From assembly GCA_964247055.1 (NCBI GenBank), contig OZ176055.1, positions 6,696,001-6,760,000 of the forward strand: DNA of 64,000 nucleotides. The letters run 5' to 3'. Under the pieces are notes generated by a model that saw only the letters and a list, made by a program, of their open reading frames with translations, was not told the origin of the DNA and ran no database searches. The position numbers and the translations under genes were made by a program. Positions 48 through 63,217 of the stretch are shown here, one piece after another; the stretch's first letter is position 1; each line of letters opens with the position of its first letter. The DNA is from Paragordius varius. Lineage: Eukaryota > Animalia > Nematomorpha.

Positions 48-828
48 GATACACAAATGAGTAAAGATACCTGCATATAAATTCTAAATTAATATTGCAA
101 ACGATGTGGAGGTCGTAGCAAAATATTTTCCAATTTTCGTTTATGGTCACGAGATTCTGTGGATAAAAATTTTAATTGAATAAAAAATTTTCGATTTTAA
201 CTCATTTTACGACTATCTTACCATCGATTCTTGTCGTGATTCAAGCGAATAATAAAAATAATTCCCAAACGGCTAGCTGTGATAAGAGGCAATTTAAAAA
301 TACCATGCTCAAAAAATTTAAGTTTAGGCCAACAAATATTTATATTAAAATAAAAATATACCAGGTTTATTCATATAGTTGGAAACTTTATTATAATCGC
401 TACCTAGCTACGGATTTTAACCAAACTGGTTAAAACTATATTTAAAAAATTATTTAAACGACAACACTCCACACGAGACCACGTTGTCTCTAAAAACCAT
501 ATAAATTGACCCAGGTGTGAAAAATAAATAAATAAAAGTTTTTGTGGACCGTGGTGAGCGGAGTTTAGTCTAATACATTAAATTAAAAATAAATTTGACC
601 GTTTTATTATTTAAAAAAATTCATATAAAAATTTGGAAAAAAATATATTAATAATGTTAACATAGGGGTATCCAAAAAAGGGTGTCTTTGGCATGCCCTC
701 TACGGAGGTAGGGAAAATGATAAAAACATACTTAATATAAAATTTATTGATTATAATCATTACCGAAACAAGTTTAAAAGGTTAATATATTTTTTGCTGA
801 TTTTGTGCTTAATATAGTTCAAAATTAC

Positions 829-3800
829 TTTTGGGTCACCCGTCGTTCCTGAAGTGTACAATATATACAATGGGTGTTCGCCAGGTAATGGAATGCAATC
901 AATAGGTGGATGGCCAGAAACTTCGGTGGCCCAATCGGCATCAAATTTATTGTTGAATACATTTTTTTCTATTCCTTCAACCTGATGTTTATCCTAAAAA
1001 ATAATTATGAACCTATGTAAAATTACATGTAATAATATGATAAAGGGTCCCAACTGTTTATAAAAAACATACTTTAGGGGGATCTTTCCGTTGAAATATG
1101 AGACATTTAATGGGTGGCTGTTGGGAAAGTTTGATGGCTTGATCCATGATTGGTTTATAGGGGACAATGTGGGATGGTTCTATACCATACGTGGCGGTAA
1201 GTATAACTTTGGGCTAATTTCACAAATTTATATTGGGATGAGACATATTTTTTTAAATAATTATATATGGTTAAAATAAATACATTGGCATGCTTTATAC
1301 GGACTGAAAGTTCTTTAGCACCGAAACCGCCAAAAACTAGCGAGTGTATTGCACCGATCCTAGCACTAGCTAACATACCAATCACGGCCTGAGGAATCAT
1401 GGGCATGTATATGAGTATGCGATCGCCCGGTTCCACCCCACAACGTTTGAGGTAACCGGCAAGAGCACTTACCTTTAAACACATATTGATTTATATAATA
1501 CTCCCAGAGACTAAAATAGTACCGCCAAGACTTCAAATTAAAAATATATGTTTGTATCCTTGTTTTAAGTTTGAGTGTATAAATTTAATTAGTCCATAAA
1601 AATATGTTGTTTTACAAATGTTTTGAAAAAAAAAGGATTTGATTGTAAATAACAAATAATATCAGTCATTCGAACCGGGACCATTATTTGGTTTTGGGAA
1701 TTTTTCTAAACCTTTTGGTTTCTAAAAGTTAAAAAAAATTATTATCAATTAGCCTCGCTTTTTAGCATTTTTTTATTTTTTACATTAAAAAAAATATATT
1801 CCTTAGATGTTAAAATAATATTGGGTTTTTAATGATTCTTGTGCTTATCATTAGGCAATTTGTAGATTTAAAAAAATATAAACCAAATTAAAACGATTTG
1901 ACCAAAAAAGAGGCTAGACAGAAACCATTTTTCCTTAAAAAACCATAAGACTATTTTGTCTGAAACAGTTTTTTAGAAATATATGTTGGATCAGAACCGA
2001 TGAATTATAAAAAAATCAACTCGTATCAATAATTTGAACACTAAAATATTTTCAAATTTATGTGTCGTTTATTTTGTACACATTTGACACCTATTTTAGC
2101 GTGTTCTAAAATTAACTCATATGCATAAATAATATTTATATTTTGGTAAAAAATTTGCTTTTTAATTCATCCAAATAAAGTTATTAAATATTAGTAACAT
2201 CACCTACTTGAGTTAATAATTCACCATAACTCAAAGTTTTGACACGTTGAGTCATTGGACTATCATAGATAAGAGCTGGTTGATTTGAAAATCCTTGTTC
2301 ACAATGTACATCAAGCGTATTGTAACACATGTTAAATTTACCACCAACAAACCTGTATATTATTATATATAAGTCAGTAAGTATAAACAAGTATATAATA
2401 TATATACAGCCAGAGTAAGTATACATTGCTAAAAAGTTATTAATTCTTGTCAAGTAGCATATACAACAAAGGGCAGTAATATTGGCTTCTAGTTATTTTT
2501 TCACTTTTTACTATTATTAACCAATATTAATTCTCTTTGCTGCACATGCTTGGTAATAATTAAAAAATTTATAGCAAAATATACCTACTCATACTGTATA
2601 TATATCAAGTTTTATATATTTTGATGATTTATTAATGTAGCTTTTACAATAAAATCAAAAATACAGTTTTTAGTATAGTTAATTTCGAAAAAATGCTATG
2701 TATGACCTTGAAATGGTATCAGTAAGCTAAGGCCAAACTAATTTTAAAAATTATTTATAAATGATTAAATTGACTGTTTTAGTAATATTTAATTCTGGTA
2801 AAATTTACAACTAGAGATTATACAACAATTATAAAGTATGTACTGAAAAGTTTAATCAAAAGAAATCCAAAAATAAAATGCATATATGTTTTAATTTTTC
2901 AAAATGCAAAGTATATCGAATATAATAATTGTGATATAATAGATAAAATAACCAGCTATTTTTGGCTATGCGGCCTTGGAGTTATTAATTTATTTTTTTC
3001 GGAAAGCTTCGGAACAATAATTCAAAATTGTAACTAATTTCAATATTAATTTATTTTTCGGAATTTAAAACGCGTTTGATATGGTTATTTTTCAATTATA
3101 GAATTTATTAAATGACCAGAATTTCCAGCTTTCTTGGCTTCTGCTACGGTTTTACTAATATGCATTGAAGATTTTATCGCTTTATTTTAATTCCCAATTT
3201 AGAGAAATTTAATGTGCCAAATAAATTATGAAAAATTTAATAAATATATTTAAGTAAATGCTTTGTCCTAACTTACATCGAGGCGGCAAAAAATTTTGTT
3301 AGAAGACACAGGAATATGACATTGTATTAGCCTGTTATGATGACCAGATTTGTCAAAAATTATTGGTTTATACTTATTTATATTTATATATCCTTTTTAA
3401 ACAAGATTTGATTATCAAAATATTCGTGCATAACCTGCAAAAAATCTTGGTGTGTTCTCATGCTTGTATTGTATTGTCGCCTTGAAACAAAAAAGTCATT
3501 TTATTCGACACCTCAGAGTACCATTGGCTTAAATGAATTGGAAATCGTAAATTTAACAAATTTCTCCATTATCCAATAATAATTACTCAAACAAATTTAA
3601 AAGTTAATTGGTGGGCCATTCTATTTTTTATTAAAAATTTAAATTAAACCAATCGTGTTATTATTGTGTGACTATAAACTGTATTTGATATAGAATGGGA
3701 ATATATATTAAATTTTAGTTTTAATTACTCTATAAATAAATAGCATTTAAAGTTTTAAGCTATTTTTATTATTATCATTATAAAAACATGCTATAAAATA

Positions 3801-33462: not shown

Positions 33463-35519
33463 TAGGGTTGTGCTGACCAAGTCATGACCCGGTGAATTGA
33501 CCAGTTCAGTGACTATTTATTTTTTAACCATGATCATTTCAGCTGATTTTTGAAAAATTGCTGGTAATTTTTTTGGAAGAAAAATAGTAAGTTATTTTTT
33601 AATATATTTCAAAAAAATATATAAATATTTAAATTTGCTTATTTAAAAATTTAACATGTTAAACATGCATCCTTAAAACATTAGCATTTAAGCATATCCA
33701 GTTATAAAAGAAAACATTTCAACTTTTTATAAAATACTAGCGTAAATCTCGTGCTGCTACGCAGCCCGAGGAAGTTCTTCGGACTTCTGGGGGGCATTTT
33801 TATTTTATAGGCAATTTTGGTATGCGGCACGAAGTTTAAAATGATTCACATTGTGTCATATTCTGAAATTTGACTCCAAAGACATGCTGTATGGATATGA
33901 ATGCGCAGTTGTAGGCGGGTAGCCCCCTACCCAGAGGCCAATATAAAAATGTAGTTAGGTAAAAATGCCTTTATACCTGGAATAATCGTTCAGTCCTAAT
34001 AGTTTATGGAAGAATGGTTTCAAAACTAAATAATAGTTCAATGATAGCGCATTTTTAGGGAGTAAAGGGCCTATTTAACGGTTAGTTCAAAAAATCCGCT
34101 CGACTAAAATTTTTGACTTTTTACGGGTAATACTTTAAGCAGCGATAGAACTCATATGGCCTGATAGGTTTTCTGAAATTAAGCCCCAAAAGCACGCTAT
34201 TTCGATATGACGGGTCAGTTTTTAGCGGGTAGCTCCTTACCCAGCAGCTATCATCAAAGAAACGGTGGACTAAATTTTTTGCCTTTTAACAGGGAATACG
34301 TGGAATCTTTATTGAATTTTTACGGTCTCATACCTTGGGCAATAAAACACAATAAAAATATTATTTTTGTGTTTTTTGAAAAAGGTGACATTTTACGGGG
34401 GGAGCGGGTAAAAAGAGGGCCTAAGTTAAAAAAGCGAGACGACTATGTTCGGCGCAATCGAAAACGTTCTCCGGAAAATTGTCTCAAAGACACCATTTTG
34501 TGAACTTGTGTTTTCAAAAAAAAGATTTTCATACGGGGTGGGCCCGAACTGGGGGCCTATTTCAAAAAAAGGGCGAAGCTATTGTCGGGGCATTCATTAA
34601 TGATTTTATTATTTCGAAATTTGGATTTGAATGGGTCTACCGTTTTTCCTGTACCAGATCACAAAGCTAGCATTTTCAATTTTTATAAATATATATATTA
34701 CCATAAATAATGTTTTATTATACATATATTTTTTAACATCCTATACATATGATAGATACTTTTTACTCAGCAGCTATCATCAAAGAAACGCTTGACTAAA
34801 TTTTTTGCCTTTTAAGAGGAATACTTGGAATCTTTATTGAATTTTTACAGTCTCATACCTTGGGCAAAAAAACACAATCAGAATATTATTTATGTGGACT
34901 TTGTTTTTTTGAAAAAAATGGCATTCTACGGGGGTAGCATGTAAAAAGAGGGCCTAAATCAAAAAAGTGAGTCGACTATGTTCGGCGCGATCAAAAATAA
35001 GTAAACAAAAACCATATTTGAAATTGAATGGTCCAACACGTTCTCCGGAAAATTGTCTCAACACGATTTTGTGGACTTGTGTTTTCAAAAAAAACCATTT
35101 TTCACACAGGGTGGACCCGAACTGGGGGCCTATTTCAAAAAAAGGGCGAAGCTATTGGCGGGGCACTCATTAATGATTAAATTATTTCGAAGTTTGGATT
35201 CGAATGGGTCTACCGTTTTTCCTGTACCAGATCCCAAAGCAGCATTTTCCATTTTTATAAATATATAGATTCAATTATTCCATATATGTGAACCAATAAA
35301 ATGAAAAAAAACATTTTATAATTGGATATTTCAATGATCAAAGAAAGTGTTAAAAAACAGGAAAAATTTTACTTGAAATATCCAGTATTAAAAGCGACGT
35401 ATTTGAAAATTCAGAAGTAATTTCATAATCCAATATCGCATGGTATTTACTTAGGTAAAGTGGTCATGACCATGGTCTGACCGGACTTTTTTGAAAGAGC
35501 AGTCAAATGCACAACCCTA
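33463..35519. mobile_element. hAT-type MITE (copy A), interrupted by a Helitron
   Basis: TIRs TAGGGTTGTGC / GCACAACCCTA. Segments 33463-33736 and 35270-35519 are colinear with copy B (43387-44617). No clean TSD at this copy. Confidence 0.8.
33737..35269 (-). mobile_element. Non-autonomous Helitron (copy 1)
   Basis: On the minus strand, A|TCTATATATTTATAAAAATGG is the 5' end. The 3' end is the hairpin CTCGGGCTGC-GTA-GCAGCACGAG, then 7 nt, then CTAG|T. Inserted between A and T with no TSD. Confidence 0.9.
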
Positions 35520-44617: not shown

Positions 44618-45604
44618 GTCAGATGATAAGATCTTTATTAATTTTATGTTAATTTTCTTTCAAAATTATAATATTGCTAGCTCAATGTGACCCATTATGT
44701 TGAAATTCTTTAAATTTACAATATAAAATCTAATTTTGAAATAAATGCTGTTTATTTTTCTATCCCAATTTAGGACATGCTACACCATCTACATATATTC
44801 TGCCGTTCTTTTTTTGTTTTCCTTATTACCATTTTTTGCTGCTCAACAACTTTACTCTTTTCTTCTTGGAAAAATAATTCTTTTTTTATTACTCCACTAG
44901 CGTGAATCTCGTGCTGCTACGCAGCCCGAGGAAGTCCTTCGGACTTCTGGGGGGGGGGGGGGGGGGTTCGAAGTTTGGATTTGAATGGGTATAACGTTTT
45001 TCCTGTAGATCACAAAGCCAGCATTTTCCATTTTTATAAATATATAAATGAGGATAAATAATGTTTTAATATCCATATATCTTTTAACATGCTATACATA
45101 TGATAGATACTCCTTACTCAGCATATATCATTAAAGAAACGCTTGACTAAAATTTTTTTCTTTTAACAGGCAATACGAAAAAACCTTCTCGAATTTTTAG
45201 AGTCTCATACCGTGGACAAAAAAATACAATCAAAAAAATATTTTTGTGGACTTTGTTTTTTTTGAAAAAAATGGCATTTTACGGGGGTAGCGGGTAAAAA
45301 GAGGGCCTAAATCAAAAAAGTGACTCGACCATGTTCAGCGCGATCAAAAATAAGTAAACAAAAATCATATTTGAAATTGAATGGTCCAACACGTTCTCCA
45401 AAAAATTGACTTAACCCATTTTTCATACGGGGTGGGCCCGAACTGGGGGCCTATTTCAAAAAAAGGGCGAAGCTATTGTCGGGACATTTATTAATGATTA
45501 TATTTTTTCGATATTTGGATTTGATTGGGTCTACCGGTTTTCCTGTACCAGATCACAAAGCCAGCATTTTCCATTTTTATAAATATATAGATGATGATAA
45601 ATAA

Positions 45605-48160
45605 CACTAGACAACAAATTTTTTGGCCAAATGAGATTATTTTCGTTTTAGTTAGCTAATAGTATACTTATACCAAAAATTTAAAAAAAAAATGGGCTAC
45701 TTCAAAGGATTTTTCAAAAAATAAAATTTTCTGTTTTTTGAAAAAACGGTAATTTAACAAGTTAATCAAAGATATCAACTACAAAACTGCTTTATATGTA
45801 GACAAATTATATATCAATCGATAGAGAGTAATCGATTATATATAAAAAATATAAAGATAAATGATTTTAATTAATATGCTTATAAATTTTCAATTTAAAA
45901 TAGCAAAAATTAACGTTTTTTTGTGAGCGAAAATCTTAAACTGTAAAGTTTGCTAAAAAATTACGGTAAATAACAATTTTTAACTAATAAACATTGCTCT
46001 TTCAGAATAAAGAAATATTTTTTCTGTATAAAAAGTTTTTGTCGCTTTTATGAGGTGATTTTCATTTGCAGTGGTGTGTTAAATTTTATCAAAATATATA
46101 CAAAAATACTTTCCTAGTGCATTAAGGTATAAGTTTTTAAATCAAATCGTTGATACGAGCGAGATCCCGCAAGCAGGTATTTATCCTTATAATATAGAAC
46201 GCAACTGCAAAAATGATCCGAACAATTTTTGTATGTGCTGCGGAAGAACAATATTAATGGTTTAATGGAAGAAATTAACATAAATTATAATCCCGAGGAC
46301 TGGGCATTATTATAAGATTCCAACATGGTTAAAAAATATTCATAATTTTAGGTAAGCTTGAAATTCATATTGTTGAATATACAGGATAACAAGTATCTTT
46401 TAATAATTGGGTATGCCAGGGCTGCCAAAGAATCATATGAAATTCTCAAAAAAATTTTAGAGTGTGTGAATTATACAAGGGATAATTGGAACGTTATTGG
46501 TGACTTTAAAGTAGCTAAAAATTAACATTTAGGTTTTATTGATGATTGCCGGCTTGCAGGGTGGGTTACCTAAGTACCACTGTATATTTTGTCTGTGGAA
46601 CAGCAGGGAGCGTGACTTACACTATCGAACGAAAGACTGGGGTTCCAGAGTCTTCACAATTGGATTGCATAATTGTGTGAGGGAACCCCTCATTGATATA
46701 AAGAAAGTGTACATCCCCTGCCTACATATAGCACTGGGACTCTTTTCAATATTTATTAAAAACTTGGATAAAACATCCAAATCGTTTATTTATTTTCAAT
46801 CTAAACATAAACTCACCAAGGCTAAGGCAGAGGCCGGAGTGGTGACGGGGCCGGTGATGAAAAAAATATTTACAGATACATATTTTTTTGAACTACTTAA
46901 TGAGAAAGAGAGGCTAGCATTTGATGCTATGCAAAAATTTGATTCTGGGTTCTTAGGTTTGTATATTATAATATGTATAGGATCTTACAAATCGCCACGA
47001 TATCTAGAGTTGGCAGAAAATTTAATAAGAAGTTTTCAGGATATGGGTACCTCATTAAATTAAATATAGGTTGTCAAATGTCCATGAAAATGCACATGGT
47101 GGATGAACACCTCAAGAATTTTCCCTTTAACAATATATCTGACCAAATCGGGGAAAGAATGCATCAGGGCCTGAAGATATATGAAAAAAGATATAATAAT
47201 AAAAATACTATTAATATGATATCTGATTTTATTTGGAATCATACATAATTTTTATATATTTATATGCCACCTATATGTATTTACAATAAATAAATGTATT
47301 GAAATTGTATTTATTTTGAAATCGATTTATTTAGCGTAAATAAATTCCTCTGTACAATATGTGATAAAAATCTTAGCATTAATATGTTTCTCTGTTTGTG
47401 GTTAAGTTTATTGAATATAATCTATAGATATCCATCAATTTATTTGAACAATAAATAGGTTTGAGTTTTCAGATTTGTGTAAATTAAAAATTTCTTCACA
47501 TAAATAGGATACCATAATTAATAAGTTTACGTAATATATGTGATTAATCCATTTTCTATGATAATTACTCGGCCTATATATAAATGTTAATTTTACCATA
47601 TCCATCTCGTTCAAATTTAAAAAAATATAAATATACACAAGGAAAATAGATTTTGCATAAAATTGGATTGGGTTCTCCGTTACTGATGTACTCAAATTGG
47701 TTCATAACTTTAAGTTAAAATTAAAATTAAACAAAAAAATATATATATTCTAAAAGCTGATGCTTTAATCTATAAATTAAATACGTTATCATTACACTGA
47801 GACATATTTACAAACGTTTGGGATGAGCTTGTAAAAAAGCAAAAAGTTTAACTATTATTCTCTTAATTTAAGATTTTTAATAAAGGCTTTCATAATATAT
47901 TTAGATGTAAAAGATAGAGTTTTTTATGCTTTATTTAATGATATAAGTTTCATATTTTTAATATTTTTCTCTCTAATAAAATATTTTATAAAGCGTCCGA
48001 TTTATTGATTATTTTAAAATTTACAAAATATTAATTTTCTCAAAATCTATGCAAGCCAAGTCAAAAATTTTTTCGGATTCGGACTCTGAATAGTATACTT
48101 GATTAAATTTCTGATTTTTACAAATGGCTGTTAAAAAAAGTCAAAATTTGTTGTCTAGTG
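45605..48160 (+). mobile_element. Chapaev3-like (CMC superfamily) DNA transposon, 2556 bp
   Basis: 18-bp TIRs CACTAGACAACAAATTTT at both ends and a 3-bp TSD TAA (45602-45604, 48161-48163). CAC termini with a TWA 3-bp TSD and the transposase motifs fit Chapaev3 as I recall it; the family name needs a database check. Confidence 0.8.
46150..47248 (+). pseudogene. Intron-containing Chapaev3-like transposase, inactivated (internal deletion plus premature TAA)
   Basis: Removing GT-AG introns 46177-46197, 46328-46351, 46511-46532, 46957-46980 and 47047-47069 yields RNCKNDPNNFCMCCG / YNPEDWALL*DSNMVSLKFILL..KESYE..WNVIGDFKV..AGLQGGLPKYHCIFCLWNSR..PCLHIALGL..GVVTGP..FLGSYKS..QDMGCQMSMKMH..ISDQIGERMHQGLKIYEKRY..MISDFIWN. 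Confidence 0.85.
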
Positions 48161-51100
48161 TAATGTATTAATATCCATATATCTTTTAACATGCTATACA
48201 TATGATAGATACTCCTTACTCAGCAGTTATCATCAAAGAAACGCTTGACTAAAATTTTTTTCTTTTAACAGGCAATACGAAAAAACCTTCTCGAATTTTT
48301 AGAGTCTCATACCGTGGACAAAAAAATACAATCAAAAAAATATTTTTGTGGACTTTGTTTTTTGAAAAAGGTGGCATTTTACGGGGGTAGCGGGTAAAAA
48401 GAGGGCCTAAATCAAAAAAGTGACTCGACCATGTTCAGCGCGATCAAAAATAAGTAAACAAAAATCATATTTGAAATTGAATGGTCCAACACGTTCTCCA
48501 AAAAATTGACTTAACCCATTTTTCACACGGGGTGGGCCCAAACTGGGGACCTAATTCCAAAAAAGGGCGAAGCTATTGTCGGGGCATTTATTAATGATTA
48601 AATTTTTTCGATGTTTGGATTTGAATGGCTTCACCGGTTTTCCGGAAACAGATCACAAAGTTATATGAAAAATCAGTTTTTAGCGGGTAGCTCCTTACCA
48701 AGCAGCTATCATCAAATAAACGGTGGACTAAAATTTTTGCCTTTTAACAGGGAATACGTGGAATCCATATTGAATTTTTACGGTCTCATACCTAGGGCGA
48801 AAAATCGATATAAAAAATTATTTTTGTGGACTTTGTTTTTTGAAAAAGGTGGCATTTTACGGGGGGAGCGGGTAAAAAGAGGGCCTAAATCAAAAAAGTG
48901 GCTCGGCTATGTTCAGCGCAATCGAAAATAACTAAATAAAAATCATATTTAAAATTGAATGGTCCAACACGTTCTCCGGAAAATTGTCTCAAAAACACGA
49001 TTTTGTGGACTTCTGTTTTCAAAAAAACCCGTTTTTCATACGGGGTGGGCCCGAACTGGGGGCCTATTTCAAAAAAAGGGCGAAGCTATTGTCGGGACAT
49101 TTGTTAATGATTATATTTTTTCGATATTTGGATTTGATTGGGTCTACCGGTTTTCCTGTACCAGATCACAAAGCCAGCATTTTCCATTTTTATAAATATA
49201 TAGATTATCCATTAGAGATGTATCAATCGATTATATTGTTTCTTTTCATGGGCATTATTACATATAATTTCCTTATCTTGCCTCGAAAAAAAGAAAAATT
49301 AAGATTTTTGATCAAAATAGTGGAACCGTTTTGGAATAAAAAGTTCTTTTTTGAAAAATGGAACAGGGACCAAATTCAGATAAAAACAGACGAACAACCT
49401 GATCCTATTTTACTATATTAAAGCTTTAATATTATTAATTATTTTTTCCAATCAATCGTTTGCTCCCTAATAAAATCGAAAAGGATAGGCAAAATAATCA
49501 TTTTAAAAAAGTGTTATTATCATGCCTCATAATAAAACATCAAAATTAAAATAAAAATATACCTCACAAAAATTAAGAGAAAGATTGCAATAAAATTTGT
49601 TAAATTCTAATAAATCATGATACCAATTCCACCTCACCCTCATCGGGGCCGCAATATTTTTAGATAATTATAATTTAATAACACCCCTGCCTACCAACAA
49701 CGCCTTGATAATTTGAGATATACATAATAGAGAGGACCTTAATAATGACAATAATACGATAAAGAAATAAAAGTGGATTATATATATAATATTATATTTA
49801 TGTCTAGGGATGCGGTTTTTATGAAAATTTATATTTAACTTTTGAAACATTGTTTTGATGTTCTTAAATTGCCACTCTTTTCGAACGAAGCCACTCAAAA
49901 AAAATTTAGTCGGGCCACGCATTCGAATGCAGTTTGATTACTGCTTTTATACAACATATATATTTAACTAATCAAACTTTTCTCGCAGAAACTAATATTA
50001 TTTTTTTACTGATACATTTGTTAAACAACAATCGTTTTTAGAAAAGGGGTCAAATGTGTTTTTTTTTCACGCGTTCCAACGGTTTAAATTTAATATTTTT
50101 TTAAAATGAAAGGGGTTGAGTGGAAAGGGAAGGGGACGCCTTCGAGAATTCATGCACCCGGCGCCAGAAATGCAAGCTACGCCTCTGGGCCCATCCATCA
50201 ATGGAGTGCCATTATAAAAATGCGCTGATAATTTTATTGTTATGATAATAATAAATTTATTATCGGACTCCAAATCTAAAAAAAGCGTTTTTGACGAATG
50301 GGGATGCATGGAGGGGTAATGTATAAAAGCGGCTTAACTATCGGTCAATTTAATCAATAAAGATGCCTATAAGTTTTTAAAATATTTATATTTTATCGGA
50401 TATATAATAAAAATCTGAAAAACTTTTCATAAAAATGACGATATATCATTAAAAGATTTTTACTTCTTGACCAACTTTTTGCTATTAAAAGTGGTTTTAT
50501 AGTATCAGGGTAAACGAAAATTTAAAATAAAAGATGTAAATAACCAAACATTGACCTGACGCTTTTTTAATGTATTATTGAAAATCCGTCATTATGATCG
50601 GGCCTCTATAAGAATATGTACACGGCCATGTCATAAATATCAAGGTATGTTAATTAATGTGTATCTCATAGGTTTTCAAAATACATGTTGGCTTTTGCTA
50701 AAATCGCTGATTTCGAATGAGGTGAAAAGGCTAAAGTTGGTGTACCATATTTGGGGATTGTTAAATAAGGAAATATTTTTAATTGAATATATATTTTTAT
50801 TGGATTTCTTAATTTTCGGAAAACCTCATTGCAGGTAGCATTGAATTGAGAGTCTAATTGAAGAAATGGTTTGAGCCTAGTACATATACAAACAAATATC
50901 AATTGTTGCTTATAATGGTCTTACACTTCTTTAAGGAAATGTTTCAGACATTTGGTAAAGAAATCTATTTGCAATATGTTTTAATAAATATCATTTGATC
51001 ACTCCAAAAATCAGTCTATTTCTTTAGATAAATACCTTTATTTTAATGTGAACATATATTTTGAACTTTGACGAAGTACAAAATTAAAACATACTTGGCC

Positions 51101-51524
51101 TGTTTTTACACCATCGGTGTGGTGTTCCATAAAAAAAGGTGCGCAATTTTCGCAAATATATTTTTTGGACAAAAGGCTTTATTTAAAAAAATATCACTAA
51201 AATATAACATAAACTACAAATAATAAACAAAACAATATTTTTAAAAATTATAAATTATGAGATGTGGACTCTAATAAGCGTTACACCGTTTCCATCATCT
51301 TTCAAAATAGTTAGAAGTACATGTCAACAAAATATCCCAAATTTGTTTATGCAAAAAATAAGAAAACTGTTGAAAAATTAAGGTTTAGGAAAAATATTAA
51401 ATAATATCATACATCCCACCTAAGTATAAAAAACCTAAAAACTCCTAATTTTTACGATAATAGTTTATTTCGAATCATATGCCATATATAATAAATTTTA
51501 TATTATATGTTACAGGAATGACAA

Positions 51525-53152
51525 TCTATATATTTATAAAAATGGAAAGTAGTAGCTTTTTGATCTGTTTCCGGTAAACCGCTAGACCCATTCATATCCA
51601 AATATAGAAAATATATAATCATTAATGAATGCCCCGACAATAGCTTCATCTTTTTTGAATTAGGCCCCCAGTTCAGGCCCACCCCGTGTGAAAAATGGTT
51701 TTTTTTTTGAAAACACAAGTCAAAAAAATCGTGTCTTTGAGACCATTTTCCGGAAAACGTGCAGGACATCAAACATGATTTTTTTTACTTATTTTTGATT
51801 GCACAGAATATAGCCGGATGCTCTTTTAATTTAGGTCCTCTTTTTACCCGCTCCCCCCGCAAAATGCCATTTAAAAAAAGTAAAAAAAAATTTTTGAATC
51901 TATTTTTCGCCCAAGGTATGAGACCGTAAAAATTTAATAAGAATTCCAAATATTCCCTGTTAAAGGCAAATTTTAGATGTGCGTTTGTTTTATATTGGGT
52001 TCTGGGTAAGGAGATACCCGCTAAAACTGACTTATCATATCGAAATAGCGTGCGTGCCTTTGGGACTAAATTTCAAAAAACCTATCAGGCCATATGAGTC
52101 CAATCCGTGCTTAAAATATTACCCGTAAAATTCTAAAATTCGAGCGGATTTTTTAATTAGCGGTTAAATAGGCCCTTTATGCCCTGCAAAATGCGCCACC
52201 ATAGAATAATTTTTAGATTTTGTGGCCATTTTTCCAAAAACGAATGAGAGCATACGGAATAGATTATGATTCCAGGTATTCTTAGGAAAAGGCATAAATT
52301 TTAATTAAGCGCTTTTTTGTATCAGCCTCTGGATAAGAAGCTACCCATCTAAAGCTGCGCCACCTTATGAAAATTGCGTTGTTTAGGAGTTAATTTTTAG
52401 AAAACTATCAGGCCATAGAAGTTTTATAAGGGCCTGAAATATTTATTACCACTTAAAAAACAAATATTTTAGTATAAGGGGTTATATCAATGCGTCGCTA
52501 AGAAAAGTTTTACGCCTGAAAAATTCGCCGCCAGAGAACAATTTTTTGGCTTTCAAGCAATATTTCCAGTAACTTATAGGAACATATGACATTATAATTC
52601 CAGATATTCCCCATATAAAGACAAAAGTTTTGCCTGACGCTTTTTTATACCTCCCTTTGGGAAAGAAGCTCCCGCTAAAAACTGTGTCCTTATATAGAAA
52701 TTGCGTTGTTTTGGAACTAATTTAAATGCCATATGAGCTCATTTAAAGTTCGAAATATTACCCGTACTAGGTAAAGATTTAGGTCGGGCCTTTTTTTATT
52801 AGGAATAAATTTGGGACCTTTGCGTAAAAATACCCCATTTTTTCGAATAACTCATGAGACGATGGTCTCAAAGCCAAATATTTTCCATATAAAGGCAAAA
52901 AATTTAACTTAGCGCTTTTCCATATAGGCTTATGGGTAGGGGTCTACGGTTTAAAACAGAGATACAATAATGGCGTGGCTTTGGAGCTAATTTTCAATAA
53001 ACTTGAGACGCCATACGAGTTCAATAAATTTAAATATTACCCATAAAAAGGTAAAAATTGTAGTTATCCCTTTTTCAAACACCCCCCCCCCCCTCCCCCC
53101 AAAAGTCAGAAGGATTTCCTCGGGTTGCGTAGCAGCACAAGTTTTACGCTAG
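51525..53152 (+). mobile_element. Non-autonomous Helitron (copy 3) with four diverged ~280-330-bp internal tandem units
   Basis: A|TCTATATATTTATAAAAATGG at 51525. The hairpin CTCGGGTTGC-GTA-GCAGCACAAG is followed by CTAG|T at 53149-53152. Repeated motifs (CCA.ATATT..., AAGG.AAA, CTACCC/CTCCCGCTAAAA, TATCAGGCCATA) start near 51950, 52270, 52600 and 52875. Confidence 0.9.
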
Positions 53153-56337: not shown

Positions 56338-58728
56338 ATGACTTTATCCAATGATGAAATATCACGCTTTTCTCGGCATCTCATTTTGCCTCATATTTCA
56401 TTGTCAGGTAATGTGAAATATATATTTTTGTAGGTCAAACCGAATTAAAACACAGCCATATTGCGATTGTGGGGGCAGGAGGAATTGGATCATCTATTAT
56501 TTTATATTTAGCTTCTGCTGGAATTGGTATTTTATATAAATATATTAAAGGAACCTTATCCATATTTGATGATGACATTGTGAGTTTACAAAATTTGCAC
56601 AGACAAGTACTTTACACGTTTCAGGACATTGGCAAGTCAAAAGCAGAAGTCGCCAAAATTGTGGCTCTAAGCCGTAATCCAAATCTCACCTGTCATGCAT
56701 ATCCTATCCGGTTAAATTACAAAAATGCATTTGAAATTTTCGATTATTTTAACGCAATTGATCCGGACAAACATCAAATAAATTTAATTATAGATGCAAC
56801 CGACAATTTTTCTGCTCGATATCTCATTAATGATTTATCAATTTATTATGATATACCATGGATATTTGGTAGTGCTATTGGTTTTGAAGGTCAAACATCC
56901 ACATTTAATTATAAATGCAAAAAAGAAGATAGTTTAAATTCGAATTATCCATGTTATAAATGTCTTTTCCCAACAGCCCCTCCCCAATTATCTGTGCGAT
57001 CTTGTGATGAGTTTGGTGTCTTAGGTTTTTATATTTTTTCTGTTAAAGTAAAATATTTTTCTATGAGCTATATAAATTTATAATATAAATATTTATAAAT
57101 TATATAAAAAAATCACTTTTATTGTATTTATTAGTGGCTGTTAAGTTTTAAGATATTATTGTTAATTTGTTATGTTTAACTATATAATTTGAAAATCAGA
57201 TCGATAGTGTATAATCTTATTTACTTTAGGTGTTATTCCAGGACTCATTGGAATGATACAAGCTTTAGAAGCACAAAAAATATTGATAAGCAGTTTGGAA
57301 CCAAGTTTTGCTGGAAAATTACTCATGTTTGATAGTTTATCAACTGATAATCCCTTTAAGATAGTTAATTTTCGCAAAAAACCGCGGACCGATTGCTCAT
57401 CATGTGGTTTGTTAAAAATGGACAGGTAGGTAACATAGTTAATAATAATTTACAAAAAAATAATTTATATTTATTTAATTATATTTTCAATTCTTTACTC
57501 TAAATTTACCATATTTTCTCCTCATTCAAGAGCTATTGGCACTTGCAATTACGAAAAAAATTTAATTAAAAGATAACCAAGATTAATATTAGTTTGAATT
57601 TGAAATAAAAGAAAGGTAAATACTTCAAATTAATATGAGATAGTTAAACAAGGTTAGGTGTATTTTCTGGACCCTTAAATTTTTTAAATAGATCTCTTCT
57701 AGCCGATATACAATTGGATCAGATATGTGCTAATAATGCCAATTTTATCGTTCCACAAATTGCAGTAAACGATGTTTTCCATACTATGATACAAAAACAA
57801 AGTATCGAAGATAAAAATTCAATTTATAATAATGGTAAATCGATCACACAATATGTTATTGATGTAAGAGAGGCACATGAGTTGGAAATTTGTAAATTAC
57901 AAACACCAGATCACATTACATTTTTGAGTAATTTCGCTTCTAAATTTATATTTATTTAATGGTATAATTTTATAATCTCTTATTGTAAGATCGTTTTTTA
58001 TAAATTAAACTTTTATAAATTTATCATTTGTTTTTAGTTTTTTGCCATTTATACATAATTTTTTGAATCATTTGTTTGTTTGGTGATAAAGTATCTTTCG
58101 ATTGGATATTTTTTATATCCTAATGTATAATATTGCATAAAAGAATTTTATCTAAACAATTTTAGATATTCCATATAGTAATTTTGTGAAACCCAGTGGA
58201 GTTAAACACATTCTGAATGTTTTGCTAAATCACTTTTCCCCCTCCGTGCTGGAAGCAGAGCGTTCCCCCATTGAAGGTATGTTAATAAAATTTTCATTTC
58301 CATTTAATTTGCCATTAATACAAAGCTTATTTAATCTTAAAAAAATTAAAAATAACACTAAATATTTGAAACTATTTCAAACATGATATTTTCTAATGAT
58401 CCTTTATTTAAAATCTAATATATTTATTGTAGTTTATGTCATTTGTCGCCGTGGTAAAGATTCTATTTTAGCTACTTATTATTTGCAACAATGTATCGAT
58501 CGGTTGTTAACTAAAACAACCATCCAAGAATCAAATAAGCTTAATGACTATTCTGATTTGGAAATCGAACTAAAACAAATTTTGAAGAAAACCGTTTCGG
58601 AACACACATCAATAAATGAAAATAATTGCAAGCAATATGCAATAGGCAAGCGAATAAAAGTTTTTAATGTTACAGGTGGATTACATGCTTGGGCATCTAA
58701 AGTCGACAAAAAATTTCCTGTATATTAA
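56338..58728 (+). CDS. MOCS3: Adenylyltransferase and sulfurtransferase MOCS3/UBA4, 491 aa, seven exons
   Basis: Exons 56338-56407, 56434-56526, 56551-57024, 57230-57425, 57692-57927, 58166-58276 and 58433-58728 (1476 nt, phases consistent). Motifs: RFSRHLILP, IVGAGGIG, NLHRQVL, DATDNF, SAIGFEGQ, CYKCLFP, SCDEFGVLG, CSSC, and rhodanese VIDVRE, ICRRGKDS and GGLHAWASKVDKKFPVY. Confidence 0.96.
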
Positions 58729-62067: not shown

Positions 62068-63217
62068 ATGACGGCTGATAAAACGAATGCTAATTCAACC
62101 AGCATTGGTATGAAGGAATTATGTTGCTTATTTTGTTGTCCACCCCTTCCATCGAGAATAGCCGCAAAACTTGCATTTTTACCACCCGAACCGACCTATG
62201 ATTTTGTTCCAATAGCCGAGCAAAAAATAAGTTTTGAAAAAATTAAATCTCCAAACTCCGTTAAATCTCCCCACCAAAGAATAATTGAAATTTCTAAAAC
62301 TCATGGAATTGAATCTCTTGCGCGGCCAATTATTGAGAAAGCTACATCTCTTACTTCACGTCTTATGAACAAAACTGTCGAACGAGGTTCTCCCATCCCT
62401 ACTTCGAATGATTCCGCTATTGTAGTTAAAAATGAACCAAGTGAAAATAAAGCCTTGTCAAGCAGTCCAGAAAATGTATTATGTTGTCCATGTTATAATT
62501 TATATCTTGGACTTCAAGCGGATTGGCATTTTTCTGCCAAAGATTTGGATCGTCTTGAAGCTTTTACCGTTACGAATAAACGGGGAACTGTCCTACCATG
62601 TATTATGGTACGCTCTGGTGTAATTTTATCATCAAAGCACATAGAAAATTATGATAATCATCATTTACATTTTAAAGCTGTTAATTCTGCCGATATTCCA
62701 TTTATAAACAGTATATTTTGATTTTTTTTATTGTTTTACATATACATTTCCCTTTTTGCTAACGGTGTTATTAGGAAAATTTTAGGAATTATTTAATATG
62801 ATACTACGATTAACGCTAAAAAGCAAAGACAAAAAATTTGGTTTTTATAGTTATTTCAAATATAACCTCAACCTATCGTTTGGGGGTGCAAAAAAGGAAT
62901 AGAAATGTAAATTAGTAACACATTTTATATTCCACACTCTAACTTGATGGCATAGAAAAAAATTTAGACTCTGAAATTATGGGTGCCCTTTGTAAAAAAT
63001 GTAATTAACCTTCTATAGTCTTAATATTCACTGTAATTAATATTTTTTGTATAAAAAAACTTTTTATTCATTTAAATCGATATTTAGTTCAAAATACGGC
63101 TTTGGCCTCTGTTTTATCGAAATCGCTGAAAGAAGGAATGGAAAGCGGTTCCCAGTTATATAAACAAGAGCAATACTTTAATGCAGTTTCAAATATCGCC
63201 GCAAACGGAACGGAAAA
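62068..63217 (+). CDS. ABHD17: ABHD17-family depalmitoylase, 5' part; gene continues beyond the window
   Basis: The [28 protein letters not shown] palmitoylation motif and [27 protein letters not shown]. Exon 1 is 62068-62617; a phase-compatible candidate exon lies at 63088-63217. The hydrolase core is not in the window. Confidence 0.9.

Follow-up and report, generated by a model that had tools for sequence, protein, structure and literature searches.

In a 64,000-nt stretch of Paragordius varius DNA (contig OZ176055.1; "the window" denotes this whole stretch), positions 45605..48160 of the plus strand are occupied by a 2,556-bp transposon. We regard it as highly probable that this element is a dead Chapaev3-type deletion derivative from a lineage whose transposase gene is split by spliceosomal micro-introns. 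As a member of a known transposon group, now dead, the element itself is ordinary; what sets its lineage apart is how the transposase gene is divided into exons and introns. The anatomy and mobility of the element, the absence of the interrupting segments from relatives, the conservation of their positions and the selection on the exons are direct observations. That the segments are spliceosomal micro-introns is well supported by sequence comparison, splicing being the step that we infer.

The gene remnant is interrupted by five segments, all of which begin with GT and end with AG on direct reading, at the coordinates listed in an earlier interpretation of the window made from its letters alone (the sequence-only reading). 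Exon 1 survives as a remnant (46083..46176), an open frame that has no ATG and in which 46146-46176 is homologous to relatives; the segment that follows it, probable intron 1 (46177..46197, 21 nt, phase 1), is in frame and stop-free, with matching segments in two other in-genome families, L036 and L055. Exon 2 starts with a CxxC zinc-binding motif (46198..46255) and reaches the junction of an internal deletion at ~46247-46258. Beyond it, in a frame different from that of the CxxC part, come the end of the exon with the first catalytic Asp, in the motif DSNM (46256..46327), and intron 2 (46328..46351, 24 nt, phase 0), which has stops inside. The next exon (46352..46510) ends in GDFK, with the second catalytic Asp, and is followed by the frame-shifting intron 3 (46511..46532, 22 nt, phase 0). 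The largest exon (46533..46956, 141 codons plus 1 nt) carries the C(2)C and LH motifs. Between it and a short exon recognized by frame continuity (46981..47046, 21 codons plus split codons) lies intron 4 (46957..46980, 24 nt, phase 1), in frame and stop-free, while intron 5 (47047..47069, 23 nt, phase 1) shifts the frame and has stops inside. The last exon (47070..47248, with its stop codon at 47246-8) holds the H(4)H motif, within whose region we infer the catalytic Glu. The boundaries of introns 2, 3, and 5 are defined by homology.

Removal of the four segments 46328-51, 46511-32, 46957-80, and 47047-69 leaves one continuous frame between 46256 and the stop at 47246-8, in which TAA occurs once, and the motifs DSNM, GDFK, HCIFC, CLHIA, and HMVDEH are read in the exons. 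The earlier proposal that excising these four segments restores the conserved motifs is borne out by this frame and by the gapless fit of the exons on relatives described below. The joined spliced translation was used as a frame-continuity check, and each exon was searched for homologues separately. Of the five segments, three are frame-shifting or contain stop codons. Every segment ends at the first AG past its nucleotide 4, and the G+C content of the segments is 0.18, compared with 0.35 in the exons. In this DNA, GT..AG pairs of 20-30 nt occur ~18 times per kb, so the dinucleotides alone mean little and their position at homology-defined boundaries is decisive: with GT at a frequency of 0.043 and AG at 0.039, the chance per segment at a fixed register is ~0.002. 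A window-wide ORF-joining statistic that compared GT-AG with control dinucleotides gave no discrimination. The exons after three of the five introns themselves start with GT (AG/GT; 46352, 46533, 47070), a classic proto-splice-site context.

Relatives outside this genome read through the same places without interruption. We searched 1.84 billion representative proteins with the uninterrupted 272-codon frame of a distant in-genome paralogue and obtained 5,116 outside homologues, the named ones being arthropod hypothetical proteins. On one of these, P0006, the exon peptides adjoin exactly: the pieces bearing DSNM and GDFK at residues 236-258 and 260-311, the largest exon at 312-454, and, after a 23-residue interval, the last exon at 478-535. 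This spacing equals the 21-codon exon plus two split codons and is kept in all seven outside proteins checked (7/7), which leaves no room for segment 4. Judged from their gene ranges, the P0006 and P0019 genes are single open reading frames (ORFs) of 1,683 and 1,680 nt. The comparison was repeated at the DNA level with 80 metagenome loci (33-45% identity; 45-58 scorable per position). There was no extra base at position 2 in 44/45 loci or at position 3 in 47/54, and for positions 4 and 5 taken together there was none in 48/58, where the flanking exons lie exactly 23 codons apart. The remaining loci show frameshifts, two tandem duplications, and two introns at position 3; the last are GT-AG introns of ordinary size, 185 and 86 nt, with pyrimidine tracts, on the soil metagenome contigs L088 and L076, at the exact position and phase of intron 3. 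These two loci are sister to each other and not near the clade of the window element. A homologue with the segments as coding sequence, named by the sequence-only reading as an outcome that would speak against it, was found neither among the proteins nor among the single-ORF genes or the metagenome DNA (introns 2-5). Because segments 1 and 4 preserve the frame and lack stops, the frame by itself is no proof for them; segment 4 is proven to be an intron at the level of sequence homology, and segment 1, at the 5' end, is probably one, judging from its conserved position.

The relatives inside the genome carry segments at the same positions with unrelated sequence. The largest exon matches more than 90 places, which fall into three clades. 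Clade I consists of the window family and the L036 family, which are 62% identical. In the L036 element (2,982 bp, at 287-3268 of locus G000 C9:2105614-2109036), six introns of 21-29 nt divide seven exons that are all open, and the alignment with outside proteins starts at residue 2-5 and ends at residue 537; by its sequence the gene is apparently intact, which agrees with the earlier suggestion that intact relatives may exist. Its GT-AG segments occupy all five positions (21, 29, 23, 24, and 23 nt) with a sequence different from the window's, and the sixth, of 22 nt, falls in the part deleted from the window copy. Its terminal inverted repeat (TIR) is similar but not identical to that of the window element and begins CACTAGTCAACAAGG, and its target-site duplication (TSD) is ATA. 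In clade II (~35% identical), segments are present at positions 2, 3, and 5 (24, 24-27, and 58 nt), together with a private segment of 21 nt, and absent at position 4. Clade III (L055) is continuously coding where segments 2, 3, and 5 would lie. Its GT-AG segments are one of 62 nt at position 4, with the phase unchanged, a private one of 22 nt, and one of 29 nt within 1 nt of position 1. The position and phase of intron 4 are occupied in the L036, L052, and L055 families. Position by position, the lengths across in-genome families are 24/29/30/24, 22/23/27/24, 24/24/21/62, and 23/23/58/58 nt, and some families have no segment at given positions. The near-copies of the window element carry segments at these positions too. 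Among families that are 35-62% identical in amino acids, position and phase are therefore kept where a segment is present, and sequence and length (21-62 nt) differ. Divergent copies with open exons keep the GT and AG, and copies with decayed, stop-filled exons have lost one or the other, so that the lack of GT/AG in other copies, which had been raised as a possible objection, is confined to decayed ones.

The exons themselves are under constraint. Between the window family and the L036 family, the proportion of differences is 0.79 at synonymous sites (pS, saturated) and 0.27 at nonsynonymous sites (pN), and the resulting pN/pS of 0.34 indicates purifying selection; identity by codon position in the largest exon is 0.70/0.80/0.44. 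Since the exons were under selection with the segments in place, and three of the five segments are frame-shifting or stop-bearing, the segments would have been removed from the message. Taken together, the GT/AG ends at homology-defined boundaries, the absence of introns 2-5 from homologues, the conserved position and phase, and a length in the range of the host are the properties of U2-type GT-AG introns.

Host genes in the window carry introns of the same size, as had been noted for the segment lengths. A MOCS3/UBA4-like gene contains a 26-nt intron at 56408-56433 and a 24-nt GT-AG intron at 56527-56550, the latter equal to an eight-residue gap against the Uba4 structure 6YUB; since this intron keeps the frame and has no stop, it shows up in an ORF scan as eight additional residues. 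Further on, the same gene has an intron of ~210 nt, and an acyl-CoA (acetyl/propionyl) synthetase-like gene on the minus strand at 1-2500 has visible introns of ~70, ~100, and ~650 nt. With introns of ~70, ~210, and ~650 nt present too, host intron sizes are mixed. Introns below 30 nt in animals have been reported only in myxobolid myxozoans and Dicyema japonicum, in 2026 (PMC13644364); these are host-gene introns with a median of 22-27 nt and a reduced GTa...AG signal, and transposon introns are not discussed there. At 62068-62718 the window contains the first large exon of a host gene of the ABHD17 type (palmitoyl hydrolase); along most of its length the identity to its counterparts in other animals is only ~30%, in keeping with a host that evolves fast. 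A ciliate-type genetic code, under which (table 6) there are more long frames, was rejected on the basis of host exons of 195-223 codons without in-frame TAA/TAG, and further by the GT-AG boundaries and the presence of the animal-type ABHD17 gene.

The ends of the element are intact, as the sequence-only reading had stated. The left TIR (45605..45622, plus strand) is the 18-nt sequence CACTAGACAACAAATTTT, which starts with CAC; the right TIR (48143..48160, minus strand) is the reverse complement of CACTAGACAACAAATTTT and ends with GTG. Both are perfect, where chance would provide 0.3 matches. They are flanked by TAA at 45602..45604, preceded by A, and at 48161..48163, followed by T. The part between the gene remnant and the right TIR (47249..48142) is non-coding and 66-85% conserved in related copies. 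The element lies inside one run of a repeat family whose units of ~480-575 nt form short tandem runs (34230-35270, 44967-45604, 48161-49210, and, on the minus strand, 51520-52015), with ORF-like stretches inside the units, and an unfilled sister site therefore exists in a neighboring unit (45020..45100, plus strand). This paralogous empty site, 546 bp upstream of the element, matches its left flank at 37/39 positions and its right flank at 38/39, with a single TAA at 45059-61 in between, and so shows the insertion and its TAA duplication directly. Elsewhere in the 110.5-Mb assembly, three further copies are ~98% identical, on contigs C10, C11, and C3; one of them is 5'-truncated. The TSDs of the complete copies are TAA (window), TTA, and TAT, always with A before and T after.

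That the window copy is dead, with a deletion after the CxxC region and a TAA before a conserved Asp, had also been recognized, and both lesions are present. The internal deletion removed ~630 nt (~215 codons): on outside proteins the CxxC piece corresponds to residues 5-20 and the exon piece after it starts at ~236, L036 has ~630 nt more between the two pieces, which differ in frame in the window copy, and the DNA homology to other copies breaks at query positions 643-651. The in-frame TAA (46313..46315), immediately 5' of the Asp codon (46316-18), takes the place of a Val or Met codon in relatives. The start codon is missing as well, with AAG in the window copy where L036 has ATG. Hence the window copy has no complete open transposase gene, and it falls among non-autonomous internal-deletion derivatives. 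The stop and the deletion are common to the three ~98% identical copies that cover the region, which implies that a defective element was mobilized in trans. A search of the genome with the largest exon (the >90 places above) gave no open copy of the window's own family.

We place the element in Chapaev3, within the CMC superfamily, by its TIR, its TWA duplication, its motifs, and the RAG1/Transib-like fold of a homologue. The published hallmarks of the group are CAC/GTG termini, a TWA TSD between A and T, a DDE transposase that bears C(2)C, LH, and H(4)H motifs, and a mostly single-exon gene (PMC4079192, PMC3014272). The element and its copies have 5'-CAC...GTG-3' termini, and the window insertion reads A-TAA...TAA-T. 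The corresponding residues D255, D309, C328, C331, and L376-H377 do not vary among 40 outside homologues. A structural model of the homologue P0006, not of the window protein, has a predicted local distance difference test score (pLDDT) of 91, and its RNase H-like DDE transposase fold matches those of RAG1, Transib, the P element, and Hermes; against the RAG1 core and HzTransib the Foldseek E value is 7e-8 and the template modeling (TM) score ~0.45. Look-alikes in the ESM Atlas were unnamed eukaryotic clusters with weak RAG1-Zn and Plavaka hints, which we treat as leads only.

Several observations weigh against the interpretation given above. TSDs of the forms TAT and ATA occur beside TWA. Pfam searches with the exon pieces and ten outside homologues gave no catalytic-core family, only sub-threshold zf-AD-like matches at the N terminus. 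In the window copy, neither intron 1 nor intron 4 breaks the frame or contains a stop, and intron 1 has no outside homologue for comparison, the N terminus being unconserved. Transcript-derived proteins across the exon junctions were sought, with one weak match only, and the window copy, being dead, expresses no transposase. The outside protein sets are biased to uninterrupted ORFs, a bias of which the metagenome DNA check is free. Two points concern the history of the introns: a tree of 141 residues leaves a single origin of the three in-genome clades undecided, and the L088 and L076 introns, in the context AAG/GT after the lysine of DLK or DFK, indicate that not every position need be a host gain. 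A window-wide ORF-joining statistic that compared GT-AG with control dinucleotides gave no discrimination.

As to how the introns arose, gain in the host lineage is favored by their near-universal absence outside and by the differing occupied positions among the in-genome clades; the 58-62-nt versions at positions 4 and 5 in sister clades, together with the outside introns at position 3, indicate that shrinkage has occurred too and that position 3 is intron-prone. The earlier statement that the lineage had shrunk or gained introns thus finds some support on both sides. Most of the introns would have arisen in the host lineage, in a gene that normally has one exon, and some would have shrunk from ~60 to ~23 nt. 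The specific sequence of events, in which a single-exon transposase gained about half a dozen introns in the host lineage and these were then trimmed to a host optimum of 21-24 nt, is offered as a tentative proposal that we would not call probable. In the sequence-only reading, such a history would imply a long vertical residence in the host. A different origin, in which the introns are real but all descend from a Chapaev3 ancestor outside the host lineage that already carried them, and have only shrunk since, with no host gains, draws on the exact position of the 86- and 185-nt metagenome introns, on the size changes implied by the longer versions in the sister families, and on the two-exon structure of the published Merrow and Garfield Chapaev3 genes. 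We consider it unlikely. Almost no outside relative is interrupted at any of the four positions, the two intron-bearing loci are mutual sisters away from the window clade, the in-genome clades differ in the positions occupied and carry extra private introns, and most Chapaev3 genes are single-exon according to the literature.

By analogy, the tiny introns might serve to regulate the transposase, for example through tissue- or stage-specific retention. In the P element, retention of the third intron is controlled by tissue or stage, and introns 1 and 4 of the window lineage could stay in the message without breaking the frame. We hold such a function to be very unlikely, as introns of this kind are also present in host housekeeping genes and no special regulation is needed to account for them. 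Far less credible still is the idea that the segments are small insertions accumulated in a decaying pseudogene, with GT-AG ends arising by chance in AT-rich DNA (the window has ~28% G+C). The copy is certainly dead and GT..AG pairs of this size are common, but insertional decay would not place segments of unrelated sequence at the same positions and phases in families 35-62% identical, nor leave the exons under purifying selection, nor keep GT/AG in open copies while decayed ones lose it, and the probability of finding GT and AG at four homology-defined boundaries by chance is ~1e-10. That the interruptions are dealt with by a mechanism that is not splicing (a different genetic code, programmed frameshifting, or ciliate-like DNA elimination), as the 28% G+C and the segment size at first suggested by pointing to a ciliate, has next to no plausibility, the boundaries being GT/AG and not TA/TA and the 22- and 23-nt segments, with several stops, not being bypassable by a single frameshift.

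The preferred reading, a dead deletion derivative from a lineage with micro-introns in its transposase gene, suggests the following mechanism. The window element would be a recently moved dead copy with intact ends, on which transposase supplied by another copy would cut at the CAC...GTG inverted repeats and which it would paste into an A/TWA/T target with a 3-bp duplication. The transposase gene of the lineage would comprise seven exons and, between them, six introns of 21-29 nt excised by the spliceosome. One of the six was lost with the deletion, so the window copy keeps five. An intact relative would depend on the host spliceosome, which copes with such sizes in host genes, to remove them, because three of the five are frame-shifting or stop-bearing and a DDE enzyme of ~555 residues could not otherwise be made.

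The lineage can be compared with several known systems. Chapaev3 elements such as Anolis Chapaev3-2_AC, Merrow, Garfield, and Conan likewise have TIRs of ~18 nt that start with CACTAG or CACTAT and end in an A/T run, and the TIR of Anolis Chapaev3-2_AC, CACTAGGAAACACAATTT, closely resembles that of the window element. Animal Chapaev3 elements also share the 3-bp TWA TSD between A and T, a DDE transposase of ~550 residues in which the C(2)C, LH, and H(4)H motifs occur, and many non-autonomous derivatives; they differ in gene structure, published Chapaev3 genes being single-exon, or two-exon in Merrow and Garfield, whereas the window lineage has six introns of 21-29 nt, of which the window copy has five. 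In plant CACTA (En/Spm) elements, of the same superfamily, the number of transposase introns varies between families by gain and loss (PMC4158355), but these introns are of ordinary size and loss dominates, while the window lineage shows mostly apparent gains and sizes at the lower limit for animals. The introns of myxobolids and Dicyema japonicum resemble those of the window in size, in the GTa...AG signal, and in the A residues before AG, and they too come from AT-rich parasite genomes, although the study covers host genes only (PMC13644364). RAG1/Transib shares the matched fold and a zinc motif of paired Cys and paired His inserted in an RNase H-like domain; it belongs to a different superfamily, with ~10% sequence identity and a 5-bp TSD, compared with 3 bp here. 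In the Drosophila P element, whose fold was also matched, the transposase is likewise made only after several introns are removed. The P-element introns have ordinary sizes, however, and the splicing of one of them is controlled in a germline-specific way.

Animal introns shorter than 30 nt were long thought absent and have been documented only in 2026, for host genes. Transposon families provide an independent, multi-copy record of the same splicing system, in paralogues of known relative age, where one intron position may hold 0, ~23, or ~60 nt. Questions that thereby become testable are the pace at which introns are gained, the pace at which they become shorter, and the sequence that a minimal intron requires. 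Annotation based on ORFs reads such transposase genes as broken, and some are probably intact. If gain followed by trimming is true, the enzyme could be produced only in the few animals that splice introns below 30 nt, which would lock the family to its host lineage, and the paralogues would form a dated series for measuring the speed of intron gain and shrinkage. This element group is otherwise known for frequent horizontal transfer; if ordinary animals cannot splice the introns, there would be a limit on its horizontal spread.

The 18-nt TIR of the window element is itself widespread. It has 493+493 exact matches in the genome (~986), compared with 0/1 for a control pattern, and most of these flank an abundant 1.1-kb non-coding family (L061-L070, e.g. 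C1:3062124-3063226) with a median pairwise identity of 94%. Members of this family share the identical 18-nt TIR with the window element and only ~45 nt per end in common; the TSDs of ten sampled elements were TWA in nine and ATA in one. No open transposase gene bearing the exact TIR of the window element was seen in the genome. Partial Chapaev3 copies also occur in head-to-head (palindromic) pairs, at L005-L008/L035/L040 (C6:4529414-4533106), L038/L039 (C1:6900786-6902466), and L041/L047 (C4:2228360-2229285).

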